DNA of 64,000 nt from Oikopleura dioica. Its lineage: Eukaryota; Animalia; Chordata. The translations under genes and the position numbers were made by a program. Position 1 is the stretch's first letter; each line of letters opens with the position of its first letter. The notes under the pieces are model-generated. The model did no database searches. It saw only the letters and a list, made by a program, of their open reading frames with translations, and was not told where the DNA came from. Of the stretch, positions 757-51,744 are shown piece by piece. Location of the stretch: NCBI GenBank assembly GCA_907165135.1, contig OU015568.1, positions 11,718,001-11,782,000 of the forward strand, in the 5' to 3' direction.

Positions 757-2745
757 ATGTCGACTCGGTCAGGCTCGGTAACTTCGGGCCGCTCAAATGG
801 CAAGTATCGGACGCGCTCCAAGACCTCTGAGGTAAGCTTTAGTTATGATTTACAGGCAAAAATTGGGTTCACAAGGTTGACGAGCTGCTCTTTGGCGGAC
901 CCAACGGTGGTCGACAGCCACGATCGGCTAACAGGAAGCCCGAAGTTCTCCAGGAAAGGGTTGATGATTTTAAATTTTGATTGCGTCCCCGTTAAATTTA
1001 TAACCTTTCAAAGGTGATCACCAAAGATCTTATCCGCAATGTGATTGTGCCTCAGCCGAAGTCCGACCGATCCATTTTGCTGGAGAAGTCAATGGCTCAG
1101 CATATCGAGGAAAAGTCCTTTGTGAAGTCTAAGGAGGTAATACTTTCTGCTTCAAGCAAATTCTATGATTTTTTCAGACGATCAGGGCCGAAATGGACTT
1201 GGCGCGGAAAGAAAAGAACGATGCGATAACCGCTGCCGCCCAGAGAAAAGAACGATTCAAGGAGATCGACATTCATCGTAAAATGAGCCAGGTAACAAAG
1301 GATTAACTCGCCCAAATATTAATGTGGATTTTAAGGCGTTGAATGAGATCGACCTTGAAGCCAAACGAATCAACGAGCATTTGCTTGAAAATGCTAAGGC
1401 TAAGCGACTCGAGCAAGAGGACGAAATCAAGCATCTCAACGAGCTCATCCTCAATGCCAAGGTAAAAAACAAATCTCTTTGTTGATTCCAATGACGAAAT
1501 TCAGTGCCACGCTATTCGCGATGCGCAAATCTTGGAACGGGACCTTATCCAAAAGGAGGAGATGGAAGATGAGGCTCGTTGTGATCGAATTTCTGAAGTT
1601 CACCGGTTCGTAAACATTTTCTATTCTAGAGATTTACAGTTTTTAGCTTGAACTGCATCCAGGACGCGGAGCAGAAAAAAGCGCTTATGACGGCGAAAAG
1701 AATAGAAGGCGCTCAGCAGATCATGGACCAGATTAGGAGAAATGAGGAAGCTCGCATTTTGGAAGAGGAGCGCAAAAACGCTGAACAAGGTAATTCTTAA
1801 TCTTTTTATACATTTTATATTGGTTGATTTTAGCTGCTCTGAACCGATATATCGCCAAGTTGAAACAAGAAGACTTGGACAAGTTGCGCGAGAAGCGAGA
1901 GTACCAGGCTGGTATTCAGAAGGATATCGACGTCCTCAATCAACAGACACAAATTGTCAAAGAACGCAAGATCCAGGAGGAGAAAGAACTCGAAAAGAAG
2001 ATTAATGCGTTCGTTGAACACCGTGAAGCGCGCGAGGCTGCTTTCAAGGCTGAGCAAGAGTACATAAGGAAACTAAAGGAGGAGAAAGCGATGCGACTCC
2101 TTCGACTTCAGGAGAGTCAGAACGTAAGTTTTCGTTGCCTCGATCTTCTTTTTTATCAAATTTTAAGGACCACAAGGCGGAGCAAGACGCCATTCGTGCC
2201 AAACACGAGCGAGAAGCCGCCGATCGAGAATGGCGAGCCAAGGAGCTCGAGAAGAAGAGGAAGAACGAGGAGACTTTAGATATGCTGAAGCAAGCTCGAC
2301 TGAAGCAGATTGAAACTCGTGAACACTACCAAGCTGTTCAGGCGCAGCGTGAGCGCGACGAATTCCAGCGAATTCTCCACAATCAAACTCTTAAGGCTAA
2401 AGCCGAGAAGGAGGAAGATCAGGTAAATTTGACAATAGTGAGAAAGGTGATTGATTGAACGTTTAGGCTCGACATGAGAACAACCTGAAACACGCCGAGG
2501 ATATCCGCAAGCAGATCCGCGACCGGGAGCAGGAACGACTTCAGAAACGTCGGGAGTACTTTGAGGAGGCCAACCGCAAAATGGCGGCCGAGATCGAGCA
2601 CCGCAACAAGCTGCGCGAGCTCAAGGTGAAGAAACTTGAGGACCTTCGCCGCGCTGGCGTGCCCGACAAATACACCGCAGAGGTAGCCCGACGCGTCCTC
2701 GACGACTCGCAGAAGCCGCTTCAGCCGCTCCACGTCAAGAAATAA
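757..2745 (+). CDS. CFAP45: Cilia- and flagella-associated protein 45 (CCDC19), multi-exon
   Basis: Spliced translation gives YRTRSKTSE|VDELLFG, VITKDLIRNVIVP, ELILNAK|CHAIRDAQILE, AEQDAIRAKHEREAADREW and KKLEDLRRAGVPDKY, all matching CFAP45/TPH-domain motifs. Short GT-AG introns, e.g. 832-875 and 1137-1177. Confidence 0.92.
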
Positions 2746-3346
2746 ATCCTGACGTGCTTTATTTCTTTATAACTTTAATAAACTATTTATTTTTCTACCA
2801 AAAACAATCAAAATGTTTTCAAAAGGCAACCTCTTGATCACATTTTGTCGTTTATGATTTCATTGAAAGACGAATTCAAAATCATCTGTCTGAAAGACGA
2901 AATAGGCGAAACATTGATAAAAGGGAGCACTTACAAACGGTTCATCAAAAGTCATCGTGAAGAGACGGGCGAGGGTAATTTCTATAATTGATCACTTCCT
3001 GAGGACTGATTTTTGATGAGCTATCCCTCTGTGCTCAGACTCTGGTATTGATTTTCGGCGCCATGGGAAGACAAGGTATATTTTAGAATGAGGAGTTTTA
3101 TTGTTTGGAGAGTGTCTTCTTATGTCAGAGTGAGTGATAAGCTATTTTTAATGAAAAAATATTAGAAAAAATTTTTGAGTATCATAATATTTGGAGGATA
3201 AAAAGAAAAACAGGATTGTTAAATGCAAAGTCCTTTGAAATTGTGAGAAGTAGAAAGAGCGTACTGCTCTACATCCTTTCTATTTTTGTGACAGGTGCGT
3301 CAACTCAATGCTAATGGCGAACTTAACTGGCTCCTTCAACATGTTT

Positions 3347-4456
3347 TTACAACTTGGTCAGACAAACTTGTAAATGTGAAAGCACGTAATTAGCATGTTT
3401 AAAAGGCATTTTTGCCGAATTGACAAGAATGATGGTTGACCTTTTTAGCTCTTGATAATCATCACACTTGGCGGCCGAAATGATTGATTCCAGAAGATGC
3501 AGAAACACCTGAACTAGCCGCCCTAGAAATGGCCGAACGCCAACTTGGCCGCTACTCGAATAATCATTCTGAAGAGGTCCAAGCATTTTTTCGGTTTCCT
3601 CAATTGAATCGACAATGAAAAGCCAAATGTTTCCCGAAAAGAACTGTAAAGAAAAAGTGTGAAATTTATCACTGTCAGTCCCTTTGTCACGAAAAAATCG
3701 CACCGATTCATTACCCTCGATTCTCATCCTCTTTCGGAAGCCTGGTCTGATCCAAAAACGGTGACCCGAATCGTCAGGTACTCAGAACCAAGTGACATCT
3801 TTCGCCGGTGAAAATTAAAGTCATAAAATGTTGAATAGTACCTCGTCGAAAATAACAAGTGTCAAGGTCTTGTTTGACATTTTCTTTCGCTCGTCGTTCT
3901 GAGGCTGCTTTGGATAACTTTGGTTACTGGATATTACAAGCACTAAAGTTATTGAAACAGCCCGCCACTTTGGCACCTTGGCAATGTTGAAACCAGTAAC
4001 AATGAATACGCGGCCCAGATTAACGGAGAATTTGATCAGTAGACTGGCTTTATTCTCATAACGAATCAGGGTTATTTTCAAGACATTCTACAGAAGATTT
4101 TTGTAAAAAATGATTTAGTATCAAGATTATAGCGGAAATAATAAGCAGTCATTATCATAAGTCCTTGATTTACGAATAACAAGATAAAAGGTGATAGCGT
4201 ATCTCTTTTAATTTATAGAGCAGCTTTCAAAAAATCATTCAGAATTTATGATTCTTTGTCTTTGCGTTAAAACTGTCAAACAGGCACAAAGTGCGATTAT
4301 GAGCAAAACATGACAAAACTGGTAAAGCGATTTTAGGTAGAAACATGTGTTTAAATTTTGAGGTGATGCTCGCAACCGCGATCGCTCGATGGAATGTGGA
4401 TTGCCTTTTGAACTGCCTCTGAGCAATTGCTGATTCCTCCCTTCTGAAATAACCAA
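3347..4456 (-). CDS. Possible multi-exon membrane protein, unresolved
   Basis: Chain of minus-strand ORFs, one with a hydrophobic segment (FCHVLLIIALCACLTVLT) and others with protein-like composition. Exon joins not resolved. Confidence 0.2.
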
Positions 4457-7025
4457 CCGGTAAGAAGGCTTTGAAGGCCATTGTCATCAACAGAGATCCA
4501 ACTTTCAAGTACCCACTTCCGGAAGCAATCGATTCTAGTACCAGACGGTAAGCTCGTAATTTACAGACCGCGCGGGCCGAAAAAAATAAACAAACAAGAT
4601 GGTGGTTGAATTCGATAATTGTTCATAAAATTGACATTTGAAAAATTGTTCTCAAAATGATTCTTTTCGAAAAATTGTAAATGAAAAATAAAGTAAGTTT
4701 TCAAGGTCTCAGTAGATTTTGCCCTTAGTGAAGGTCAGCCGCGCTGGCGAAAATTTGTCTGTCACAGACACAGTAACAGATAATAAACCAAACTCAAGAG
4801 ATTTTCAGCGAGTGTAGTGTTTATTTACCACTGCAATAAAACGTGGCACGGGGATATCAATCTCCATCCCTAAAAAATTTGTTTGGTCGCGAAAATGCTC
4901 TTCGCAGATTATCCGGGAAACTCATCGTGCTCCAAATTTTATCGTGCATCCGGGACGAGCTAAATTTCCGTTTGCACGGAAGATGCCTGGAAATTGGATA
5001 AGCAATTTACAATTTGCTATTTTTTCCTATTGTGGCAATAGAAAAATATTTAAATGGGATGATGGGAAAAGAAAAGTAAGGAATTTCCGGGAAATTCGGG
5101 TAGTTTTATGAGAATTTTTCATTGAATCTTTGTTTTTGCCAAAACACCATTATAATTTTTAAACTTAATTTTGACCAAAAACTCGCTCATTGTCTACTGG
5201 AAGATATCAATTTAGTACTTTTTCTAATAAGAAGGTAGACAGTCTAGCTCAAATAAAAAAATATTGCTCGAATAAAAAATTGCTGAGCTTTGAAAATAAC
5301 CGAAACATTTAATAAGGGTTTCCCTTATCACCACGAATGGTATCTTGTGAAAACAAGTATTCGAGCGAGCAAGGGAGAGTGGAAAGAAACTCCGAAGCTG
5401 GTATCACATGTGATTGCCGATTGCGGGCGCCTGCTTCTGAACTTGAGCCAAAATCTTCAATTAGACGCTCTTTATCATTTGCCGAGTTCAAGCTCATTGC
5501 TAAATCATGAGAAGTCGCATCACCATTTTTACGGTCTGAGCATCTGTATGCGAGCTTTTTCGACCGCTGGAATATCTGGTAATAAAAAAGGGGGCTTATC
5601 AAATGACCAGCAAATACTTTGATCAAACCCTCGTCGCGCTGACAGTTTGCTGTCAAATTCGACTATGATTTTTGATTGAAAGTCTCTCTGGGTGGCTTTC
5701 TTTCAAAATCTTTTTCTTGGAGACGCAGATTTTCCACGACAAAAAGCATTTATCACTTCTTTGAGTTTCTAAAAATTGCTCAGAAAAGGGGAAAGCAAAA
5801 ATTATAAGTGGAATTCCTTTGTCTTGTTTTTTCGTTTCCTTCGATTGAGTTCTACTCAAGAATCCGGAGCTTAATTCTATGTAAAGCACTTGTGCTTAAA
5901 GTTGTGGTATTCGCTTGTTCACCAGTGCGAGGCACTTCTTTTTAATCATCATATAATGTGTCAAATTGAGCAGTTGAAAGGTGTAATGTTCGAAACTCTG
6001 CGGGAAACGTCAAGTTCCGGAAGGCGCTTTTGGCGGATTTATTTCGCACCGGATCAATAAAAACAACCACGGCTAACAGAACACTGACTTTTCTTGTCAA
6101 AAAGAACATCTTTTAAAATTATCTAGGGATTTATTATGATGCTTGTTTTCGCTCGGAAGCGCGTGCCAACTTCTGAAATTAGCCCTCTTTTTCTCTCTAC
6201 GATACATAATATAAAAACAGCGAAATTGGCAAAGGGAACTTCTCGCGCTTGAAAATCTTTATTTGCTTATTTTCAAAACATGACCGTGTAAAACACTTCT
6301 TTTTGTAAATTGACCGGGAAGGGCACGTGTCCGAGCTTGAATTTCGTATTCCCCGGCGTCGGGGCTAATTTGCTTTGTCAATTTTTGGACATGACTTCCG
6401 ATTTATAATTTAAAAGAGGCGTTGAAATGTAAGAATGCTCTGATACCTTGAATTAGAGCCGATAATAAACAATTAGACAATTAGCATACATTATGAAATG
6501 ATCAATTCTCGTGAAAGTGCCAGTTTCTAACCCCTGTTTGATGATTTTTTCTTTGATGATTTTTCTCAAGAATCATTTGGAAATGAATTTTGAATTATAG
6601 AAATGATGAAACGACGATTCAACAGGCAGTACTTTTCAATTTTGTTAAACAAGCCTTTTTCTACCGAGATAGTCGACCCAAATTACGGGGGATGTTTAGG
6701 AATGTGGGTTAAAAATCCTCTCGGACATTTTTCGAGTAGCCTAGGTGTGAGATTAGGCGCGTTGTAAGGGAGCGCTACTACGCCCCCGATCGCGCGTCGC
6801 GGCGCCATCTCTAGCTGCCGCGCATCTCTATTTTTCGATGAGCGGCGGGAGGTCTCTTTCTTGCCCCATTTTACTGTAGCCAGAAGATCATCCTTCATAG
6901 CACTTTTTAGCCGCTATCTCCTGATGAGTATATAGAGACCTGAAAGTGAAGACAACGAAGAAACGAGAGATCTTCAAAAATAGAGATTAACTCGCTGCTG
7001 AAGAAGAGGTCGAAGAAGAAAAGGG

Positions 7026-7397
7026 ATGAAAATTTGGGGCCTGGCTCTTCTGAGTCAGCTCGCCACGGCCTACCGAGGAGGAGATGTACTTCACGAAAGT
7101 TTCAAAGGTAAGATTCGGGACATTTTAAATTAAAATCGAACAAAGGCTGGGAAGAAACCGTAGTAAATATGGACTAAAAAGGGGTATTTGGGGAGTGTTG
7201 ACTCAGGAGAGATCGCGGAATTTGTATATTTGGGTCGACAAGAAATGACGCTTTTTGGTAAATACGGGAGAGGATCAAAAACGGGACATTGGGACTGGGG
7301 CTTGTTGAACTTGGGAACCAGCGTTGCTCTTTTTGCGGCTTTTATGATCGGCCGTCTCTCTCATCCCTCCAACTTTCCAACTTTAATGCAATCCTAA
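7026..7397 (+). CDS. Small protein (about 90 aa) with signal peptide and C-terminal hydrophobic segment
   Basis: ATG 7026 MKIWGLALLSQLATA; strong donor G|gtaag at 7108; in-frame acceptor ctcag at 7206 continues GEIAEFVYLG...LLNLGTSVALFAAFMIG...stop 7397. Confidence 0.4.
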
Positions 7398-9998
7398 AGT
7401 GGCCCACCCTGAAATCACTGTTTCCGAGCAATCCCGTAACACCTTCGTAAATTATCATTACTAACCCCACGCTTAACTTGTTTCCTCTGTCAATACAAAG
7501 CGACGAAAAACTGACAGGCTGACTTTTGCAAATCATGACCACGGGAAATATCCACACTCGTTTTCTGTCAAACATAATTGTCGTATTTCCGCTTCGAAAA
7601 TCACCGTCGCATGCAAGTACATAAAATTCTTTGCCAAAAGACGGCACTCTCCCGTTTTTTTTTTTACAAAAAGTCGATGGTTTCCAACTCAAACATGTAT
7701 TATGACTTTTTGGAGTAGAGATATCGCGATCAAGTCGCCATAAACGTGAATGATGGTCTTAATCGCAATCCTAAAAGGCTAAAATGGGGCACGGACACAA
7801 TGCCGCCGGATAACATAATTTTGCCAGAGCCAAAGAAATATGAAATTTTATACTTCCGCTTCGTCTCAGACAATAATTAGCCGCCGACTTTGAATGATTT
7901 CCCTCGGAAAACGTCGCCCACTGGCCACCCAGGCTCTTCTTCCTTTATGTTTCTATTGGAAACAATAACACAAATAAGACCCCTTGTCTGTCGAGCTAGT
8001 AATTGCCATCCGAGATCGTTTAGTTCTTCATCTCGACTTTTCAAAGGGAAATATTTTAAATCGAGTAAACAGAAATTTCGCAAGAAGAATTTTCGAAGAT
8101 CAAGCTTTTGGCAAGTATAAAAGATTAAAGTCAAACTCAAGTGCTCCCCTTTGCGCTTGAGCTTTGAGCCGTGCTCAAGTTCATCTGCTCCTCTTTTTAG
8201 TTCGATGATTTGAAATTTCGAAAATCAATTTCGTGCACGGGCTGTTGAGTTTTCTCAAGTCGGAAATAGTCGTCCTATGCTTCAGATCGATTCATTCCCT
8301 GTTCTAAAAACAAAACGCATTGTTTCCTTTGGCGAGAATAAGCTCTTCTTTTTTTTCAACCCTTTTCGAGTGGCCTGCTACTTACAAAAACAGCCATAAT
8401 AGCTCCATAATTACTCGATGGCGTCGATTGATGCCGGATATAAATAGCTTATACGGACAGAAAATGCGGTTAAAGTTGCCTTGGTGCGTTACGTTGAGTT
8501 TTATAGGGGCCAGCGAGGTTCCATTCTTCTCACGATCGCGAATTCGTTTTTACGATTGCTTTGAACCTTGCGCTAAAGCGCACAAAATGACTAAAAAAGC
8601 TCAGACAATTTCTTCAAAAGATACGTGACAAGCTGCAAAGCTCATCTCACAATGTCAAGCGAGTTACTCTTTCTAGTTCTCGGGTCATCGAGGTTAAACC
8701 AATCTGACTTCATTTCATCCTAAATTTAAAATTCCAATGGTCCTAAATTTCAATGGAATTCAAGTTGAAAAGCGATCATAAAAGAGATCCACCCGCTCTA
8801 ATGAATATTTATGTATAAAAAATTCAAACCGGCTAAATTGGGCCCTTGATTTAAAAAAAAAAAAATAAGATGCCCGTGACGACCCCTACCGCGCCAGATT
8901 TTCTGCGGTCGGGTTAGCTTCGCTCATCCAATTTTCTTCCCAGCTGTGCCAGGGTCAAGCTCAGCTGATACGGATCCTTGTGTTGTGCAATGTTCTTGGG
9001 TTGAGTCACCTATCAGCTGGAGATTCTACAGACAAGAGTACTTATAATCCAAAGAAGTAGAAATTGAGCAACAAATAATTATGACTTGTAAAGCTGCAAA
9101 TAGGAAGCCAGGTTCAAGACCTGGGTGGGCTTAGCGTTTATAACTATTATATTGGATACGAGTAAGGCCACAGCGCAACTAATAATAGTAAATCATTTCG
9201 TTTTGATAAAGCCAGCAGTTTGTTATTACGTCAATTAAAATTTATTGAATTCAACTTTTCTCGCAGAGGGCGCATTTTTTTTCTTTCGCTGTTTGGATAA
9301 AAATTTGCGTTTGGAAAATTTTTGGCCGCCTTTATCTCCTGTAATGCTTTAGCACGTGAGCCCTTTATCGCCATTTTCGAACAAGATAAAGCGACTTCCT
9401 CGACAACTGCTCAATATTTTGCTGCTCAAGTGAGCGCGAAGTTTTCCAAGTTAATCTTTCTCCTCTTTTTTATATAATTATTTGTTTTTTTCTTGATTGA
9501 ATGATATGGGAAAGGATGATGGATTTTTATGGCATTTGCCCATCTAAGGGCTTATTTAACGCTTGCCTTCATGGTTCGCGAAATAACACGTAAATGGCAG
9601 GTGCTCCTTAAAAAGCAAATAAGGAGATCCATTCTCTCTTCTTATATAAAGTCATTTGACGGGCACATAATTTTGGAAACGATTTATTACCTACTGAAGG
9701 GACCATGATTAAATGGCCGCTTCATTTTCCAGCTGCGGGGGGGGGGGCCTTTGAGCATTTTTCAAGTTGAGGAACTATTATAAAGAAAGGCGGGACAGGC
9801 AACTTGAAATTCTTAGAAATGCAAAAGTTGCGGTAATTGTGCCCAAACTGGCGGCTCGAGCACGAGTGCTTCCGATTGAGGCTGCTTTACAAGGGATAAT
9901 GACCGTGAAAAGATTTCGCGCTTCTTTGCCCTTGATCTGTTATTTTTTGTTGAGCGAGTTTAGCTTGACTGAAAAGATTGATAATATGACGTAGTTTT

Positions 9999-12900
9999 AT
10001 GCTAATCGGGGCACTTCTCTTGACACTCTTCTTTTTGTCAAAAGGATCAGCCGGAAATAATGCTATACCTAGTAGTTTGGATATACAGCGGCTCTGGTTT
10101 AGCTTTGAAAAGAAACGGAAATTGATAAACTCGGTAACCGCCCCGCAATCAGTCCTTGACTTGAGAGTGTGCCACTACTCAAATTCGCAGTTGATAAGAT
10201 TTAGAGACAACGTACCTAAAATTTAAAACCAGAAAATTTTCAAAATTTTCAATTACGAAAAGTTAATTTTAACTCATCAACGCAGAAGATTGATTAGATG
10301 ATTTTTAAGAGCGCTAAACTTGCGAAAATTGCTCCTAAACTTGTTGGCAAAAAATCAGGCTGTTTGTGTGACAAGTTTATTTTTAGAGCAGCGGATACGG
10401 GCGAATCGGGGCCAACATCCGTTTTGCATTTATAACCTAATCATGTGGAAAAAAGTGTGCGCAAAGGGCGAAATCGCGGATCATCCGAATAGCCGGATCT
10501 ACACTAAAGACGGACACCTTTATTTTTCGAGGCATTTTCCAAGTTTGGGGTGCTCAAGAGGCACTCTTGAATTTTGCACAGCTAATTGATTTCAACACGA
10601 ATTAAAGGATTTTCATGTAAAAAAATGCCCACGAGTTTATTTATAAAAAAAACTCTCGGGGTTTACTGAAAAGAGTCATTTACAAGTCCACCGAGCTGTT
10701 TGTTGAATGAGATTGAATTGAATATCGAAGGAGCAGGTGGTCGAGCATTGTTGCCATTCTCAAAGTCATATTTGCAAAAGCATCAAAAATTAAACGTCTT
10801 TTTATGCCCTGATCCGAGAAGTAATCCCAGGCACGGGCACGCACCCTTTTTACCTACGTTTTCGGAATCGCGGGTCCAAATGGAAGGAAATAGGCTTAGC
10901 TTGGAAATTCCTGTTTGGAGGTGAACTTTTCTTGATGAATTTGACACTAAACTGGCGCAGCGTGGAGATGGATCACCTGACAGATTGATGCGAGGCCCCG
11001 TCGGAACCCTCTTTTCCCTTTGACACCTTAATTTTAATTTCCTTGAGATATTTCTTGGGAACGGGGCTCAAATTTTGACGCTATTTTTTCGGGCAAATTA
11101 AAACGGAGAAATTCGCTGCTTTTGGATTTCAAGCTCAACTTCCAAAAATATTAGGGCTCTTTAATTCCATTACCTGGCCACCAGTGGCGAGTAAAAACAC
11201 CACCAAAAAACCTCATCAAACAGGTGTTTCACGCTAAAATAGAACTTCCAAAACAACGCTATCCCTTGTCCTCTATAACTTCGAAATTTACACTTTTCTC
11301 GAAGTGATTTTCTTTTAAATTCCGCGATCTCAACTGAAAATACACACCTTGAAAATTTCAATTCGAAGTTTGAAATTTTCGCCAAAAATAACAGCAGAAA
11401 ATTACTTTGCCAAAAGAAAAAGTAATTTTTTCATTCACAATCTAACCTTATCCTTTCATTTTGTAGCATGTCCCAAGCTGGAAGTATGCTGGAGGCCTTA
11501 CTTGGAAGCGAGGAGATCACCTCTGTGGTCGGAGAAGCTAAGAGTTTGAAAAATTGAAATTGAGATTTTTCAAACCGTAACATAACATAAACATAGTTTT
11601 ACTAACATAATGGCAATGATGATAATTATGTCTGAAAACTCGTTGACGGAAAACTCTAATTAAATTCGTGTAAAACTATTTTATTGCTCATTAAAATTCA
11701 TAAGAAGCCATTTATCGTAATCTGTAATCTGTAGATAAAATTCGACAACACTAAAAATTTTCACTTTTTCAACTCGGGAATAGTTTTTCCGCTGCGGGCA
11801 GTTAGAGTCGTACTGGAACTGCGCGGAGCCATTCCTAAACGAAGACAAAAAATACGCAGACATCAGTCTAAGGCTCATCAAAAAAGTCCATGACGAATGC
11901 GAGGGTAATGTATTTGTTCACTTTATTCATACTCTTCCTTGATTTTTCGACGATGAAAAATCAAATTCATGCGCTTTCGTGATTATCGTTGTTGATTTCA
12001 TTGGGTGAGAGATGAGATTTCAATTGTTGATTATTTTTGCGTTAATGTATTGAGAATTTTTTAATTTTGAAAATAGACTCTTAAGATTGTTTTAGATGGC
12101 GACGAGACGGAAATCGACCTGACGGCAGTTGTTCAACTCGATCATTCTAAAGCTGTCGAGATGATAGGAAGCGTGCTCCACTATCGATAAAACTCCAGAT
12201 TACCACACTAAGCACCAATTTAACACCTAGAAAGCCACAAGGTTTAAAAAACTAGTTTGATCAAAAATGGTCTTTCTCTGGCAGCTCTTCTTCTACGGAC
12301 CATAAGACAGCAAAAATAGTCCTAATAGATATTTATATTAACCTTCATTCTAATGAGAAGAGTTGTCTATCTTTAGGCATATCGCCATCCTCAGTGCCAG
12401 ACTTATTTGTTATCAAGCAATTAACTTTGAAATAGAAGAAAGAATCCCGTTATTTTTAATAAATTGTGTGTAACGCGTGAAAAGCCGGTAATGACGACTT
12501 CCCTACATTCCGATTCAAGCCTGGTCATAATCAAGCTCTGCCTGCAATTCAAGTATTTCCCCGACAACTCTACGAGGATTTCACCATTCTTGCAAACATC
12601 AGGTGCCCGAAAACATAAATTAATCGATCTTTTCCTTGAATCAAATTTCGCCAATGTTTGAATTAACAAAATTAGGCCAGAATTTGCTCTGATGCATTCA
12701 ATAATCCGGTATGAGTTGCATTTTACTTTAGTCGGTTTTTGTCTTCACGGCACTCTTTTTTCCCCATTCACTTGATTATTCACTCCGGTACTCTGTCAAA
12801 TTGAGGAACGATTATTCACTGATTATTCACGGCAAAACTTATCAATCAAAATTTTGACCTAATTATAAAAACAATCATTAGACCCGACTACAATGGAGGA

Positions 12901-15900
12901 GTTCTCTTTGCTATCACAGACGCTTACAGAAGAATCACTTTCTTTGGACTCGAGCTTAGGGCCGAAGCAGATGGACAGATTCAAGTGAATGTCTACTGGA
13001 CCGATGAAGATCAAGAGCAAACGCAACTTGGACAAGTTTGGGACTTCAATCAAAAGTCAAGCCAGAGCAAATGGCTCAAGTAAGAATCCATGGAAACATA
13101 GAAGAGAACCATCACTTCTCTTTTTTAGATTCGCCATTACTGTTAGTGGTCAGACTGCCATGCTTCACACTGGATGCAACATGGGCATGACGAAATCGCT
13201 CCAACGAAGCGAGCCAAAGCTCAACATCAAAGCCAACTATAATTTCTACCTTGCCAAGGGCGACAATTACATGCGCCACTACATTGGTGACATTCAGGTT
13301 TTTATCGACCTGTTGATTAATCTGAAACAAGTCCTAGGAACTCCGAATTGTCGAAGGCACCGAAGCTGCCGACGAGTACTTTTGCGATGAAGTCGGCACT
13401 CGCAGCAACCTTCCAAACTCTCTTGCCGACGAGCCCGAAGCGTCTGGCGATGACTTTTCTGATCTCATTTCTGATGATGAAGAAGTCGGGGTAAGAAATC
13501 TCTCTATTCATAATTAAAAATTTCCGATAAACTTGTCTCAAGGGGAGAATATTTGCTCTCTTCCTTGATTTCAAGTTTTTCTTTGACTTCATTTTACATT
13601 ACATACCAAGGGTTATTCATTCGTTTTCGGCTCACCGCCGAGAGTTCCTGTAAGTTTATACGTCGTTCAAACGATATATTCGTGCACCGATGATCGTTGA
13701 CTGTCAGAGTGTCTACGCTAGAATTTGCATTTTTGCTATTTTTCAACGCATAATTTATGCTGCATAAGGTCCCTAAAAATATAAAATTTGTAAAAGCATC
13801 AAACACATTGATATTAAAAGAGTCTCCTTAGAACGACCCGTCTCGCTTTATTTTCTACGACGAGGTTGACGGTTCCGGGGATGGAGCCGCTCCCGGCCAA
13901 GTTGTCGATTGGGACGATGAGGACTTGTTTTTCTCGATGAGGAACACATCGATCCCTAACATTGTCATTCCGGTTATTGATCAGTATTGGGAGGAGGTGA
14001 AGGTGTAGAAACGTAGGGGCTGAGGTTTCAATATTTACGGCAATTGAAACCTAGGGAGATCTTACATACCGCGAATATTAAGATTACTTATAAAAAGGTG
14101 CTAGAAACTAACATAGCTCGCCAATTTATTTACTAAAACGCTAATTTTCTTCAACTTGCGGCCTCAACTTTTTCAGTCAAATTGACCCCAAGATATCTTC
14201 TAGTAGATCTCGATAGGTCCGAAAAACCTGCTTCAGTGAAAATATGAACCATATATGCAGAAATATGGTACACTCATTTTTTCATTCGAATCGTGTCGTC
14301 AAGTACCATGGTTTGAAATATTAAGTTTCAAATCAGCAAATCCGGTGTGCGGTGCAAACTATGAGCCAATGTTGCTTTCTTAAACTGTCTTTTTAGTCGA
14401 TTGGAATGCCGACTGATTCCTCCTCTTCTGTATCAGGTAAAGTACCAACGTTACTGGTGAACTCAGCATTCGGTTATTCCGAGTAGTGAATATTTAACAA
14501 ATGCAGGGCTTTTTATAATCAGGTTCTTGTCAAAATGGGAAATTCTCCTCTTGAATTTGTCTTGACAGCTTTGACTTAGACAGCATCAAGCATGGTGTTA
14601 TGGCTTTTGTAGTAAGAATCAAACTTGCTGCATGGCTTTTTGGCTCGTCCTAGCTTAGCTTTCGCTCGCTAAGTTTTAACATGGTGATTCTCTATAATTC
14701 GTATATCGATTGTGGATATACTTGGTGTTCATAACAACCTACGAAACTGCTTCAACGGAATATTTTATTGAAGATCCATTTGCTGATCCTTTCTTCACAG
14801 ACAATTCGCTTCTCCCGCCGGACTCTGAGTCTCTTTTCGTCGACGAAGGTACGTCTACTTTTTAAATATTCTGTAAGAATGTTCCTTTCAAAAGAATTTT
14901 TAAAATAATTATCGATTATGTAATCAAGGCTTTTCTGATCAAAGGAAGCTGTGTCCCCAAAAGTCATCAATCCGCAAATTTAAAATTGGCTTCTGACCTT
15001 TTTTGATCCAGTCACAGCTGAGTTTAATTGCTTAATTTTCAGAGCTTGCAGTGCTCAACCCCTAAGGCGAGTGCAAATTTTGGCAGTGCGCGTAAAAAGT
15101 CCCCCGGAACCCTCCATAGCTTTGTCAACTTTTAAATTGCCGCCGGGCGCGTTTATAACATGTGTGCCCAAACACGCGGCAAAAGTTCGGAAAGTTTTCA
15201 TTATTGCTACTGTACACAAATAACTTCCTTGCTGCTGAGAAGAGCAATGTGCAGCCCGGCTCCTTTGATCAGAAAAGGACAATTGCGGGCTCAGATTATT
15301 GGAAGCGAAGAAATAAGGTTAAAAAGTTTTAAAATAGGGAGTTCTTAATGCCCCGGAAGTAGTGAAAGATTATGTGAGGCGGTGAAGAGGATTGAAAGTT
15401 GTCTTAAAAGCTGGTATTGCATAATCTACAACAGAAAAAATATGTCCTGTTTTGTAATAAGGAGCATCCCAGCGGATTAGTCGTGATTCTCCTGCCATTT
15501 GTTACGAGTTCCACCGTCAATATTTGCACCTTGCGCCACTGTTGAAATTCAACATGACATTGAATGTCTCAAAATGTATAATTTTGGGCGAATGCATATT
15601 TTCACACGGAATTTCGAGCAAATTTGAACAAGTATAAATTTCGCTCCGAGGCTCAATTTTCCTCGTTGGAGAGCACTTGAATAGATTAATTGACAGTAAA
15701 GGGAGCAACTTCTTTTATTCGGTGAATTTTATGCAGGTACCAGGGGAAAGTTCGATTTTTTGGGGATTTTTTTTATTCAAATTTTATTCAAATCTTCGGA
15801 TTACTGTCTTCTATCATTCGATATTCTGGCATATTTCTAAGAAGGATTCTGTTTTCTATTCTTTATTATAAAGTTTGCTTGAAAAATTGAGCCAAGATTG

Positions 15901-44567: not shown

Positions 44568-45416
44568 ATGTCTCGAAACAGCGAATCCGGCTACTCTTCA
44601 GACGAAAACGTCATCTCTCCCCAAGAGCAAATCGCCAAAGATCAGCGACGATTCTCGAAGACTTACGATGTCGAGGAAGAAATGATGCGCTCTGCTAACG
44701 GAATCCTTTACACTGGCAAGCACATCTCTTCTGAAACTCCAGTCGTCATCAAGCAGATTCCTCGAGGAAAGATCTCCCAGTTCAAGCAAGTTCAAGAACG
44801 AGCTGTCCCCAGCGAAATCTACTACCATTTCAAAGCGGCTCAAGCATCCGAGTTTGTCGTACAGCCTTTTGACTGGTACGAGCGACGATCTTCCTTCGTC
44901 CTTGTTATGGAGAGACTCGACGGCTTCATCGACCTCTTCGAATTCTCTAAGAAACACGGTGCTATCAACGAAGAAGCAGTCCGAATCATCGCCGGCCAAT
45001 TGATCACCTGTTGCATGGAGCTCTCCCGTGCCGGCATCTGCCACCGCGACATCAAAGACGAGAACATCCTCATCCACCCAGAGACTCTCGAAATCCGCCT
45101 CATCGACTTCGGATGCGCCAGCCGAGAAGACAACTGCTACACCACCGCCCGCGGAACCCCCTCTTACTGGCCGATCGAATACTTCCAGAACCGACTTCTC
45201 AGCGCCGGGCCACTCACTGTCTGGAGCATTGGAGCAGTCATTTACATCCTTCTCACTGGAAACTGGGAAACAGACCAGACCGGGCTTATGCGACGAAACT
45301 TCCTCGCTGAGCGGACTCTTAACAAATACACTGTCGCCCTTCTCGACCGAATCTTCTGCCCAGACCCGATGAGCAGAATTACAATGGAGGAACTACTCAA
45401 TTGTGGATGGTGCTGA
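44568..45416 (+). CDS. Pim-like Ser/Thr kinase, intronless
   Basis: VVIKQI, FDWYER..SFVLVMER, HRDIKDENIL, LIDFGC, GTPSYWPIE and TVWSIG. AATAAA at about 45501. Confidence 0.9.
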   Translation: MSRNSESGYSSDENVISPQEQIAKDQRRFSKTYDVEEEMMRSANGILYTGKHISSETPVVIKQIPRGKISQFKQVQERAVPSEIYYHFKAAQASEFVVQPFDWYERRSSFVLVMERLDGFIDLFEFSKKHGAINEEAVRIIAGQLITCCMELSRAGICHRDIKDENILIHPETLEIRLIDFGCASREDNCYTTARGTPSYWPIEYFQNRLLSAGPLTVWSIGAVIYILLTGNWETDQTGLMRRNFLAERTLNKYTVALLDRIFCPDPMSRITMEELLNCGWC

Positions 45417-45574: not shown

Positions 45575-46599
45575 TTACTTGAAAAGCTTGAGAATGTTTC
45601 GCTTGGTGAACTTTTTACGGCAGGTAGGACATGTCTTCTGAGGTAAATTAGAAAGGCAGTTGAAGCAGGCTATGTGGCCGCATGCAGTGAGAGCAGCTAG
45701 AGGATGAGCTTCACTAAAAACTTCACAACAGATCTTGCAGTTGTCATCCTCATTATTTTCTTCTCCTCCTTTTGACTTCTTCGTCTCAGGTTCGTCTGAT
45801 TCCCCTGACGATTCTAAAAATGATGCTTTTCTAGTCTGTAAAGAGCTACTGTACCAGCGTCGCTGTTATCTTCCTTCATTGCTGCTTTGCTGAGAACCAA
45901 CGATCGCTTTTGAACTTTTTTCCGCCACTTTCTAATCTTCGCTAGCTCTTCCTTGCATTTCTCTGCATCTACTTTTGCTTCCTCAAAGGCTTGACTGGAC
46001 TCTTGAGCCTTTTTCAGAACTTCTTCTACCAATTTTTGATCAACTTCCATTACTTTTCGAGATGATTCCACTTGTTTCTCGGCGTCTTCAACTCTCTTTT
46101 CTACGATACCTTCTTCATCTCTTGTCTCTTCAAAAATTTCGTTGACGATTTTAAGGGTTTCGTATCTGTCTAAAGTAAATATTTAATCAATATAATCACT
46201 TATCACTTGAAGTTTTTCCGATACGTACAGTCATCTGCGCGAAGAGCAGCATTTTCACAGCATGTACCAACGTAGAACTCTCTGTAATTGAGTTGGTCTG
46301 CGCCACAACCTTTTGAACGACCAGCGTAACATTTGAATTTTGCATCTGTCTTTTCAAACTTGGCTTTTTTGGACTCCTCGGGAAACTTTTTCGATGCGCA
46401 ACAGACACAGTATCTGTTACCCTTTATGTTTGCTGTTGATTTTGTAACACTAAAAGTTCGTTAAAGATACAATTTGTAGCTTCGGAAGACTAAATTTATA
46501 TACTTTCACTTACAGTTCGCAAGAAGAACATTTCCCAATTGATCCAAAACAAGCAACATAACTCTCAGTTACACCGAGATTCTTCGATAACCCTTTCAT
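45575..46599 (-). CDS. RING-finger protein: N-terminal Cys-rich region, coiled coil, C-terminal C3HC4 RING
   Basis: Last exon CKICCEVF...ACGHIACFNCL...TCPTCRKKF stop 45575; central coiled-coil ORF 45814-46071; N-terminal CSSCELYCVCC and KCY..GC..TCC exons. Start uncertain. Confidence 0.8.
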
Positions 46600-46920
46600 C
46601 GTCTGTTTTCACGTGGACATTAGTGGTTAAAAGTACAGTATTTCCACCCAGTCCTCAAAATTGCTTCCACTCAACTCCTCAGACGCGGCGTTCTTCCAGC
46701 GAAAAATTGGCTTGCGCGCTTTACGCGCTTGTCCTCTCGAAAGAATGTGGCTCTCTGATTGGTCAAGCGCGGACGTCTTTCCAAGCGTTCACGTGCGTGA
46801 GAGGATTTCTGAGAGATTTTTACGAAGAATTACGCTATCTTCCTGGCTGAATTTGATGATGAAACTTTATTAATCAATTTTGTGGTTTGTAACGAGTGAT
46901 TTTTTCAGACTTTTTTCGAC

Positions 46921-49900
46921 ATGGGACACGAAAACATCTGGTTCGCGCACAAAGGCAAAAACACCAAAGGCCGAGGTACGTTTCTAGGGCTCCTATTCGT
47001 TTTTAAACAGACTTAGACTCGTTACGAGGGTTTTTCTTCGAGAAAAGTAACCTTTTGGGGGCGATTTGAGGATTTTTAGATAGGAAATTTTGATTAGCGA
47101 GGCTCATCATGCTCAAATCCCTTCATTTCCCTCTGAATCTATAAATCCTCTTATCAATCACCATCCTGTCGGGCTCTTCATCCCCGATTGCCTCTGCTTG
47201 AGCAGCCGCGGGTGAAATTCCTGGCCAAAGTCAAAGCTCATTGAAGCAGTCCAAGTTTCAAGCGCGGCGAAGTTCTTTCTGGCCCAGCGCGCTTTTTAGA
47301 ACAGTTCTCGCGGCGATGAGCTCCTTGAATCCGCTTGTAAATTGTCTTTGAGCTCTTCTGGGAACTGCTCTTGGAACTTGTTGTTTCAACGAGTCAAAAT
47401 ATTTGGAACTTTGTTCATTCAAAAGTCACTCTCTTCTGATTTCAGTTGAAGATCGTTCACGAGAATGCGTCATCTTTTGAAAAACTCGAATTTCAATTGA
47501 AATTCGATGAAACTGATTTTCAGTAAAATTTGATGAAGAAAGTTTCAAATATTTCTATCAAGAACCCTCCTTCATCCCTTTTCCGCCAGCTAAAAGCGAC
47601 GGCTTCTACATCTTTTCCTCAAACTTCCCTCGATCGACTTTCGAGATTTTCCTGGAACTGAGAAAATGATGAATTATGAAGTGGTTAGATAACGCTGGCG
47701 AACATGAAATTCACGCTCGACTCGCAAGGAAATCGTACTTGGCACTTTTTCACTGAACCTCTTTTCGCTTCTGATTCTCTGGAATTTTAAGTTGAAGAGG
47801 GGACGAGAATACCGCCTTGAACCTCTTTCCTAATGTTCGTTTTGTACTTTCCAACCGAGTTGCGAACATTCCACTTATAGAATTTTTTAGTTACTAAATA
47901 AAATAACAATTGTCTAACACATAAATTTCTAGGTTTCCGACAGTGCCGAATCCAGAGTTCGAAATCCCGCGTTTGCCCGGGGGAAGATACGGGCACGGGC
48001 AAGAAAGTGAAGATTCCCGAGGGCAAAAGCGGTCACGGGCAAAAAAACGAATTTTCCCGCGGGCCAGGCGGGCACGGGCACAATAAAAAATATTCCCGCG
48101 GGCAAATTCGGGCACGGGCAAGATTCCCGCGAGCTTAAACGGGCACGGGCAGATTCAATGCACCTTATGAAAAAGTGTTTAAACTATTTAAATAGCGTGG
48201 AAATAGACACCAAATACTTGAGGGAGTATATTGAAAACTAATCTGCATACAGAACTGTTATGACGTGCTTTTTTTTAAGGTTAATGAAGTTTTCCAGCCC
48301 ATTTCCGCCTTATAGACCCCCGAACATTATACCTTTACAAATCAACAGAAATTTTAAGAACTTTAACGGTTCAAAATTCTAGAAAACTCCACTTCCGGTC
48401 GGTTCTAGAGCCGGAAATTGACGTAATTTAGGTGTTATGGTTTGGCCTCGGACGTAAAAAATCATCACCACCAGCCGGTCGTCGTACGGTTACAAGAGTA
48501 GGCTCATTCGAAAGCTCTTGAACAGGGCTTTCTGTTGGGCTTATCAAAAAACTGGGCCCTGTCCTCCTTTTTCGAGATATTTGATTTTGAAGGTAAGCTT
48601 TGAAAAATATTTTTTAAAATAACTCGTAACAGAAAGGGAGGGCCCAGTTTTTTTATCGGTCAAATAGAAAGCCCTTATCAAGACCTTTCGAATGAGCCCT
48701 CTCATGTTCCCGTACGATGACCGGATGGTGAAAATCGTCTTTTTTACGTCCGAGGCCTAGTTATGGTGAATTATAGAAAATCGCCGTTTGCCCAACTTGG
48801 AGAAGCGGAGATCTTGGGCAAACGGCGATCTGAAAAAAGTTTATATTAATTGATCATTAGACATTATTTGGCTTTTTTAATATCAATCCTGGCTTCTTCA
48901 ACGCCAATCCTGGCTTCACCAACATCAATCATGTTTTCTCCAATATCATCGACACTATATCAATTATGGCTTCTCCATCGCCAATTCTCGCTTCAAATAT
49001 GGCTTCTCCAATGTCCATCCCGGGTTCTTCGACGTCAATCCCGATTTCTCCATCGTCGATCCCGACTTCTCCAACGTCGATCCCGGCTTCATCCATCTCC
49101 ATCTGGGCTTTTTCAACGCCAATTTTATCTTGAAGAAGCCATGATCGACATTCGAGAAGCGATGATTGACAACTGAGAAGCCGGGAGTGACGTTTGAGAA
49201 GCTTGGATTGAAGTAAGTGACGCCCGGATCAGCATTGAAGAAGCCGGGATTGACGCTGGAGATGCCAGGATTCAAGTTTGAGCCACCAAGATTGACGTCT
49301 GAAAAGCTAGGATCGAAGTTTTTGAAGCCGGGATTGAAATAAGTGAAGCTGGGATTGACTGTGAAGAAGACAATAAAAGTTATATGATCAATCAATTTAA
49401 ACTAATTCACATCGCCGTTTGCCCAAGTCGCCGTTTCCCCAAGTTCCCCAAGTTGGGGAAACGGAGACCATTCGGTCGTAGTTTCTAACTAGCTCCTAAA
49501 ACTTGCGATTTAAAAATCCGAATTGATTCAGGGTCGTTTTTATTTTATTTTCTTATTTTGAAAAATAGGCTTGAGATTTAGCAGTAGAAAAAATGTTCCC
49601 CGGGCTGCCCTCGGGAATATTTCGTGCGGGAACGCGGGCAAACCGCCCGTGCCCGTTTATGCCCGCGGGAATCTTCTCATTCATGCCCGTGCCCGTATCT
49701 GCCCGCGGGAAAATTTGTTATAGTGCCCGTGCCCGCTTGGCTCGCGGGAAAATTCGTTTTTGTGCCCGTGACCGTTTTTGCCCCCGGGAATCTTAAATAT
49801 TCTGCCCGTGCCCGCCCGCCCGCCGCCCCCTTGCCCGGGAGCCGCAAAAATTTCGAACTCTGGCCGAATCACTGGCTGCCGATCTGGTCTCATCCGAAAG

Positions 49901-49972
49901 TACGGCCTCAACGTCTCTCGACGAGCATTCCGAGAAATCGCTCCCATGGTTGGCTTCCAGAAGCTCGACTAA
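46921..49972 (+). CDS. RPS29: 40S ribosomal protein S29 (uS14); coding exon 2 interrupted by a transposon
   Basis: Exon 1 46921-46975 [18 protein letters not shown]; acceptor tttctag 47932; 47933-47951 joined to 49870-49972 reconstructs [40 protein letters not shown] (58 aa in total). Confidence 0.93.
48444..48757. mobile_element. Palindromic MITE nested in the RPS29 element
   Basis: ggcctcggacgtaaaaa / tttttacgtccgaggcc termini with long imperfect inner arms (cattcgaaag/ctttcgaatg, aaaactgggccct/agggcccagtttt). Confidence 0.8.
48848..49391. repeat. Foldback made of two convergent 21-bp minisatellite arms
   Basis: AATCC(T/C)GGCTTC-type 21-nt units on the + strand from 48884 and on the - strand from about 49370; homologous ATTGATCAT ends. 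Confidence 0.8.
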
Positions 49973-50229
49973 TTTCAGTCGCACCACAAAAAAATACCCT
50001 GATGCCGCTGTTTCTTGCAAAATAAACTCCATCAGATGACTCTAAAAAAACTTACCCCGACTCGCGATTTCATTTGTCATGCATGAATTGTACAGTAATA
50101 AAAAAGTGCGCGAAATGCTTTATTTCCGATAAATCGATCCTTACTCGCCAAGCATATTGCCTTCGAAGCCATTCTTCGAAATTCTCCGAGAAAAAATAAA
50201 TCCAAAACTCATCTTTTCCAAGAGTTTAG

Positions 50230-51744
50230 ATGTCTGATCTTCCGGACGAGATATGGGAGCAAGTCATTTCTTTCCTCCCTTCTACTGGGCCCTCCATCTC
50301 CCATTTTAGCCAGGTCAACTACAGATTCGAGCAGATTGCGCGTACATTTGTGAAAAGAAAGAACAGAAGATTTGAGAAAAAAATTGCTAGGGAGGCTTTC
50401 CAAAGACTTCTCAAAAGATATTGTCTTCCTTGCTTTCCAAAAGTCAAAATTAAAGCCTAATCGAAGCCCTGAGCCATTCAAAAACACGCGCGTCAACTAT
50501 TTAGGCGGGAAACTGTTATCACGAAACTGCCCTCAACCCCGTTATCAGTCCTCTGTCGCTCTGCTCAACGGAGTTTTGTACGTTTTCGGCGGCTATGTTG
50601 ACTTGCAAACGGCTCTGAACGATTCCTGGTATTTTTCGTCAAAGAAAGAGACATGGGATCGCGTCGTCTGTTCCAAAACTCCGCAGGCGAAAGGCGGAGC
50701 GGTGATGGTCGCCGACGAAAAACGAGACAGGTTGATTTTGTTTGGCGGAAAGCTAAGCCAGGGCCCGCAGAGTGCGCTTGCTGCTTTTCGAACAGGTAGA
50801 ATATTCAAAATCCCAAATTGCTCATTTGACAAAAGATGTGGGTCTTTATCCAAACGAGCTGAGCGTCCTGAATGTTCGCGAGAAGAAAAAAGACTGGCTC
50901 AATATTCGCCTGCCGAATACTTCAGAAGGGAGAACTCAAGCTGCTGGCTGCATTCTTCCGAAGCTCGACATTTTCGTTATTGATGGGGGCTCCTTCGACG
51001 AGAGAAACCCCATTGATCCTGATCAAACCCTCGTCCTCGACATTCGAAACGCTTCGCCGACTAGTTGGAGATGGGCGAAAGTCTTTCTCGAAGGCGATAT
51101 TCCTCCCTTTCCCGTAAGCTCCAGCAAAAATAATTCTTCAACTCCAAACAAATTTAAGCGATCGATTCATGCTGTAGTTCCGGTCAGTGATGACTCCCTC
51201 ATTTTCACGAGCAATGTCGTCCGCGATTTCAAACATTGCAAAGTTACTCCCATCGTCGACAATGAATCCGGCAGAAGAAGTTTCAAATTTACATTTACGA
51301 ACATCCGAACTGACCATTCATCTAACATGCCCGCCTATCTCCGTGGAACAAGTTACATTTATTCGATGAGCAAGAGTATTCTTCTTTGGCTTTCACCTGG
51401 TAAATCACTTTCTTTGAGAAAAAAATAAACTGTTCTCAGTGCAAATGTCTGAAGAAGAACCTCAACAATCCGCTCTTGCAATTCATCGATTGATATTTAA
51501 CGAAAGCGACCTTTCTTTTGAAAACTTGCCGCGCGGTGAGAATCTCCGACTGAACACCTCTCCCCTCCCATGTATCCTTGGTTCTTCTCTTCATCTTCTC
51601 AATTCTGGATTCCTCGTCTTTGGCGGTGCTCGTAGGATCAGATATAGTTTGAACATTTTTTCCAAACCAATTTTCAGAGGTCGGCCCTTCTTCTGTCAAC
51701 GTCTGGCACGATCTTTCAGGCATCACGAGCGTGGAGCCAACTAA
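50230..51744 (+). CDS. FBXO42: F-box/Kelch-repeat protein, FBXO42-like
   Basis: F-box LPDEIWEQVISFL; Kelch motifs LYVFGG..ALNDSW, PQAKGGAVMV..LILFGG and FLVFGG. Frame change near 50392-50443 (GA-AG intron or indel); GT-AG introns at 50795 and 51114. Confidence 0.75.

Follow-up and report, generated by a model that had tools for sequence, protein, structure and literature searches.

Study of a 64,000-nt stretch of the Oikopleura dioica genome (hereafter the window; contig OU015568.1, positions 11,718,001 to 11,782,000 of the forward strand, assembly GCA_907165135.1) revealed that a two-exon RPS29 gene, whose coding sequence (CDS) starts with the ATG at 46921, is split within its second exon by a non-autonomous hAT-like DNA transposon. 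We consider it probable that this is a recent, polymorphic insertion of the hAT type which disrupts one haplotype of the main RPS29 gene. A first-pass annotation of the same stretch, made from the letters alone, had rightly attributed it to a larvacean (it is O. dioica OKI2018_I69) and had placed the element inside the RPS29 coding exon. The latter claim is confirmed: excision of the element together with one copy of its target site duplication (TSD) restores a 58-aa protein of the S14/S29 family. Two interpretations had been offered, a nascent intron or a dead allele or gene copy, and the DNA and RNA data bear on both.

The insertion is polymorphic, because the site is found empty in the DNA of other animals. 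In the DNA runs X1 and X3, single-copy flanks have contig depths of ~214 and 90-130, respectively. One X3 contig joins 47944 to 49863, skipping 1918 nt, with 8 letters shared at the joint. It extends over at least 53 nt on each side and reaches the locus's own intron 1, and its depth, 110, equals that of the locus (88-124); therefore, the empty site exists as DNA at this very locus. X3 seems to be without the insertion altogether. The element is also missing from L002, a genomic metagenome contig which is uninterrupted and has a single GCCGAATC, and from L001, a spliced mRNA of another lineage, likewise uninterrupted, with GCCGCATC at the site. Because these two are uninterrupted as well, the empty site is, as judged by sequence comparison, the ancestral state. 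The first-pass annotation had proposed to look for an empty site in other individuals and haplotypes, and the X3 contig and L002 provide it.

The insertion appears both young and real, because its terminal inverted repeats (TIRs; 13/13) and its TSD (8/8) are perfect. The ends had originally been set at 47952-49863 plus one CCGAAT copy; the insertion as such stands, but its boundaries had to be refined, the better register being 47953-49862 with a perfect 13-bp TIR and an 8-bp TSD. On the sequence of the ends, an 8-bp TSD and a TIR starting with CAGAG point to a non-autonomous hAT-type element. Several traits are shared with hAT transposons (Ac/Ds-like elements and hAT-type miniature inverted-repeat transposable elements, or MITEs): the 8-bp TSD, matching at 8/8 positions and in agreement with the 8 letters shared at the X3 empty-site joint; a short TIR, of 13 bp where ~10-25 bp are expected, with a CAGAG start that fits YARNG; short subterminal repeats arrayed in inverted orientation in both arms; the lack of coding capacity typical of non-autonomous members; and an insertion that is polymorphic, presumably through cut-and-paste transposition. 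In contrast, the superfamily is here deduced from the ends, no transposase or autonomous partner having been found in the element's open reading frames (ORFs) or in the window; the TSD GCCGAATC misses the loose nTnnnnAn target preference, with C at position 2 and T at position 7, although this is a weak feature; and the element is a 1.9-kb composite with nested MITEs.

RPS29 mRNA is found in uninterrupted form in two RNA data sets, X23 (raw reads from oligo-dT RNA-seq) and X8 (a plankton metatranscriptome from a pooled wild sample). In X23, 7,538 reads join exon 1, GTTTCCGACAGT and the sequence from 49863 onwards, i.e. an uninterrupted exon 2 with one GCCGAATC; the letters between both sides of this main joint, TTCCGACAGT, belong to exon 2a, the part of exon 2 ahead of the insertion. 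Read depth is zero over 48031-49845, and all of the loose ends at 49863 (521/521) continue into exon 2a, not into the tail of the element. A spliced-leader contig from X8 agrees with the window at every one of 72 + 165 nt of exon and untranslated region (UTR) and shows the same uninterrupted join. Low-depth X8 pieces of the element run into foreign flanks or away from the element ends, and no exon-element chimera is seen among them. The simple reading is that the RPS29 mRNA in these samples derives from empty alleles, because the empty allele exists in DNA and because no register of exact removal provides a 3' AG. Indeed, removal of exactly 1918 nt can be written in nine registers, with ends GC..TG, CC..GG, CG..GC, GA..CC, AA..CG, AT..GA, TC..AA, CC..AT and CA..TC; GT..AG, or any 3' AG, is absent from all nine, and therefore intact mRNA is not producible from the insertion allele by normal Oikopleura splicing. 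Read-through of this allele gives 25 RPS29 residues followed by 61 foreign ones, 86 aa in total, up to the TAA stop at 48136.

The first-pass annotation had also suggested to search for a second intact RPS29, and such a version is present in DNA and expressed. Both X1 and X3 contain a further contig (depth 293 and 99, respectively) which joins 46978 to 49863 and whose listed differences from the window are all synonymous. The coordinates of this joint are those obtained when L002 is aligned to the window, and L002 (791-1005) codes for the identical 58-aa protein; its intron, at the same phase-1 site, measures 37 nt, and its 3' UTR differs. An intronless retrocopy was considered as the source of the X1/X3 joint and rejected: the joint falls where the 37-nt intron of the L002-type gene would put it, whereas spliced RNA gives 46977>49863. 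In X23, 544 reads carry the L002-type 3' UTR, about one-tenth of the main form (roughly 10:1). The X3 depths, with the window-like locus split into two alleles (70 and 62) and the variant at ~100-109, favour a paralogue rather than a third allele, a choice for which depth is the only guide. The two versions differ in the length of intron 1, 957 nt here and 37 nt in the other.

Could splicing nevertheless rescue the insertion allele? The features on which the first-pass annotation had based its nascent intron do exist: there is an AG at 49840-49841 and a GT at 47957-47958, and both isoforms proposed are open and in frame. Cryptic splicing from 47956 to 49842, or from 46975 to 49842, would thus yield RPS29 with 11 extra residues or with GFRQC turned into AAKISNSG. 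However, the final 120 nt of the element contain no other AG, and agreement in phase with both donors has a chance of ~1/9, so that being in frame does not exceed chance expectation. By sequence, the two cryptic sites are poor. The donor reads CAGA/GTTCGA (the slash marks the splice site), as compared to GAG/GTACGT and GAG/GTAAAC in the real introns, and the acceptor, GCCCCCTTGCCCGGGAG, is preceded by a GC-rich stretch and has no T-rich tract, unlike the real one, AAATTTCTAG. Moreover, in this 58-aa ribosomal protein the additional residues would hit the conserved loop that surrounds the first Cys. The two junctions that had been named as a check, 46975>49842 and 47956>49842, are listed neither among the ~7,700 X23 junction reads, where an unlisted joint has at most ~16 reads, nor in the X8 contig. 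The nascent intron is left without support and we judge it very unlikely. Another route would be exact removal, at the RNA level, of the element and one TSD copy by a non-canonical reaction aided by TIR pairing, as for the N introns of Fritillaria or the nonconventional introns of Euglena. The X8 mRNA contig would agree with it, since it shows the exact join and matches the window haplotype throughout exons and UTRs, and the TIRs and long inverted arms could pair both ends. But the empty site in X3 DNA explains this mRNA without a new mechanism and, besides the lack of a 3' AG, none of the nine registers is of the Fritillaria AG/AC or AG/AT type. In O. dioica, to our knowledge, non-canonical introns still end in AG. 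In addition, only the F. borealis lineage has the U2AF duplication tied to the Fritillaria system (PMC13326754). Exact RNA excision thus appears extremely improbable, and even when it is taken together with intron birth the two are unlikely. As for the broader proposition that the insertion allele is alive in carriers, its transcripts being partly rescued through the weak GT 47957/AG 49841 pair or through an exact-excision activity, we find it quite unlikely; if true, the rescued allele would be a snapshot of transposon-to-intron conversion in an animal.

The explanation we prefer, a recent insertion into one haplotype, can be put as follows. In the Okinawa lineage of O. dioica, a non-autonomous hAT-type transposon would have jumped recently into the main RPS29 gene, at codon 25/26, and the insertion-bearing haplotype would have ended up chosen for the OKI2018_I69 reference assembly. 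This assembly was built from one male, with ~3.6% heterozygosity and merged haplotypes (PMC8008620), and we infer that the animal was heterozygous for the insertion. Since the insertion breaks the reading frame, the haplotype would be loss-of-function or at best a severely weakened allele, its null nature being deduced from the sequence. The carrier would survive presumably because of its intact other haplotype, of the second RPS29 version with the 37-nt intron, or of both. The 'dead allele or copy' of the first-pass annotation is therefore retained in part. A dead allele fits the empty site in DNA (X3, L002), the uninterrupted mRNA and the existence of a second gene version, but the term pseudogene does not fit the locus as a whole, for most RPS29 expression in X23 comes from its uninterrupted form.

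Some points weigh against this explanation. Null alleles of ribosomal protein genes usually carry a cost in heterozygotes (Minute-type haploinsufficiency). The lack of rescue junctions among those listed cannot be taken as proof that the insertion allele goes unspliced, because no RNA comes from a proven carrier: X23 has many UTR and synonymous differences from the window, so it probably represents another O. dioica lineage, which may simply be without the insertion, and X8 is pooled. The status of the second RPS29 version, paralogue or very divergent allele, is inferred from contig depths alone. Finally, no contig from an independent sample bridges an exon/element junction among those listed for X1 and X3. 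This last point, together with the fact that the assembly was made from noisy Nanopore reads (PMC8008620), would suit an artefact of assembly, or an insertion that is somatic or rare; the germline haplotype would then be without the element at this site. Yet perfect TIRs within a perfect 8-bp target duplication are the mark of real transposition rather than of a mis-join, and all DNA runs contain the element family, at ~6x single-copy depth. We therefore hold this possibility to be highly improbable.

Table 1. Features of the RPS29 locus and of the inserted element (positions in the window)
Feature	Position	Strand	Remarks
Spliced-leader trans-splicing AG acceptor	46907-46908	+	mRNA body from ~46909; 12-nt 5' UTR
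RPS29 coding exon 1	46921-46975	+	18 codons plus 1 nt, phase 1; X23 RNA depth ~2,000-2,500
Intron 1	46976-47932	+	957 nt, GTACGT...TAG; donor GTACGT at 46976; unusually long for the genome
Exon 2, part ahead of the insertion (exon 2a)	47933-47952	+	20 nt; codons ...GFRQCRI
TSD, left copy GCCGAATC	47945-47952		perfect, 8 bp
Non-autonomous hAT-like DNA transposon	47953-49862		1910 bp; splits RPS29 exon 2
Left TIR CAGAGTTCGAAAT	47953-47965	+	perfect, 13/13 with right end
Left subterminal array	47972-48151		five GCCCGTGCCCG motifs, minus strand, period ~40 bp
Nested palindromic MITE (TTGGCCTCGG...CCGAGGCCTA)	48442-48759		318 bp; own perfect 8-bp TSD GTTATGGT at 48434-41 and 48760-67
Right subterminal array	49645-49817		five GCCCGTGCCCG motifs, plus strand, period ~40 bp
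Right TIR	49850-49862	-	perfect 13-bp match to left end
TSD, right copy GCCGAATC (coding)	49863-49870		perfect, 8/8
Remaining exon 2 coding sequence	49871-49972	+	33 residues and stop; X23 RNA depth ~7,000
3' UTR	49973-50048	+	~76 nt; AATAAA at 50021-26; molecule ends at 50048

The coordinates are collected in Table 1. Joined together, 46921-46975, 47933-47952 and 49871-49972 form a 177-nt ORF, and the complete mRNA consists of the spliced leader, a 12-nt 5' UTR, the 177-nt CDS and a ~76-nt 3' UTR. The sequence ...GATTTCGATTGTCTAACAG, which we take to be the O. dioica spliced leader, precedes 46909 in ~6,000 X23 reads and in the X8 contig (with loose ends at 46906 and 46912). The joint over intron 1 (46973>47931, GT..AG) is found in 196 X23 reads and the same junction is implied in ~7,500 others; in the DNA runs this intron is at single-copy depth. 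A scan of 46500-50300 with Rfam revealed no snoRNA or other family in it. The 58-aa product matches the Pfam family Ribosomal_S14 (PF00253; S14/S29e) with 33.6 bits, as compared to a curated cut-off of 27 (E = 3.2e-8), and its length is close to the ~56 aa of RPS29 proteins. Close relatives in the protein collection are P0001 (98% identity) and P0002 (71%); an exact look-up of the protein in this collection gave no match, and there is no NCBI-sourced RPS29 model among the relatives there, the annotated OKI2018_I69 and OdB3 proteins being included in the collection. Of the four zinc-binding cysteines typical for eukaryotic eS29, the protein retains the first only, as do P0001 and P0002. In place of the CRVC...CRQC of human eS29, the present protein has CRITGC...NVSRRAF. 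From its sequence, this RPS29 looks zinc-free.

Within the window, the exact TIR CAGAGTTCGAAAT occurs at the two element ends only and no further copy of the element was found. Ten of the 13 GCCCGTGCCCG matches in the window lie within the element arms, where 0.19 would be expected by chance, and the motifs of the left array are likely transposase-binding sites. A Pfam search of the element ORFs gave no domain and no transposase, a protein which in an autonomous hAT partner would combine BED, DDE and hAT dimerisation domains; exact look-ups of ten ORFs spanning the element junctions or lying inside the element gave no match, and a search for contigs encoding two junction or exon ORFs found none. 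The element family is small, ~6 copies as judged from DNA depth, because its ends are at about 6x single-copy depth in X1 (1383 versus 214). A scan of JGI metagenomes for the element ends (CAGAGTTCGAAAT followed by 10 free bases and CCCGGG) retrieved two high-GC contigs, presumably bacterial, which were discarded as chance hits, being without further similarity to the element. The summed depth of contigs matching the nested MITE is far over that of the single-copy flanks, at 2,100-7,900 in X1 (flanks ~214) and 3,900-14,000 in X3 (flanks 90-130), and because of this it indicates a many-copy family, with tens of copies per genome. In the Rfam scan of 46500-50300, the MITE gave sub-threshold matches to plant MITE-derived miRNA hairpins, e.g. 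MIR7533 with E = 2.5e-8 and 50.7 bits versus a gathering threshold of 230. A second internal unit, at 48780-49468, is bounded by inverted ATCGCCGTTTGCCCAAG-type repeats and encloses 21-nt tandem repeats in both orientations (48869-49123 versus 49134-49337), and probably represents a further element, nested or composite.

Upstream of RPS29, at a distance of 1.5 kb, lies an intronless gene for a 282-aa serine/threonine kinase (44568-45413). A paralogue with 83% identity is located on the same pseudoautosomal region (PAR) scaffold, at 7,971,744-7,972,592 of OU015568.1, and the kinase has many relatives in marine metagenomes. No RPS29 was found within 10 kb of the kinase relatives inspected, namely the OKI2018_I69 paralogue and those in the Bergen assembly, a JGI contig and a Logan contig. 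In L001 (58-871), a JGI metatranscriptome sequence from another O. dioica-like lineage, Med22 is found 180 nt upstream of RPS29 on one polyadenylated transcript, an arrangement that looks like an operon. A tblastn search did not find Med22 in the window, which fits with the scrambled gene order between O. dioica lineages.

As a practical consequence, the public Okinawan reference of O. dioica carries a disrupted copy of the main RPS29 gene, and annotators should treat the interruption as an allele-specific insertion, not as the normal gene structure. If our explanation is right, a hAT-like family has been recently mobile in a very compact genome, and an insertion into an essential gene can segregate. 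Since RPS29 is very highly expressed, the locus is a good test case for intron birth, and the present data give no sign of rescue splicing.

The setting recalls that of introners, known from Micromonas, Aureococcus and others (PMC11282704): here too, an element with TIRs and a TSD sits in a coding exon of an aquatic eukaryote with a high intron turnover. Introners supply GT and AG at their ends, either bringing or creating them, and the element plus one TSD copy is thereby spliced out exactly; hundreds of genes contain such elements. In contrast, usable splice sites are present in none of the nine exact registers of the RPS29 insertion, its family has ~6 copies, and no spliced product is seen in X23 or X8. 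Fritillaria borealis is a larvacean tunicate like the host, and its non-canonical introns were reportedly described by Henriet et al. in 2019. Its N introns are thought to derive from MITE-like insertions; they have AG/AC or AG/AT ends and YAY triplets, one before the 5' splice site and one formed by the last three bases, and go along with the lineage-specific U2AF duplication (PMC13326754). The present case differs in its host, O. dioica, in the neighbouring intron, which is GT..AG, and in that such ends are found in 0/9 exact registers. A different kind of parallel is offered by heterozygous loss-of-function mutations in ribosomal protein genes, as known from the Minutes of Drosophila and from human RPS29 in Diamond-Blackfan anaemia. 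There, as here, one copy of an essential and highly expressed ribosomal protein gene is disrupted in a viable diploid, but in O. dioica, unlike in these cases, the second RPS29 version may buffer the dosage.

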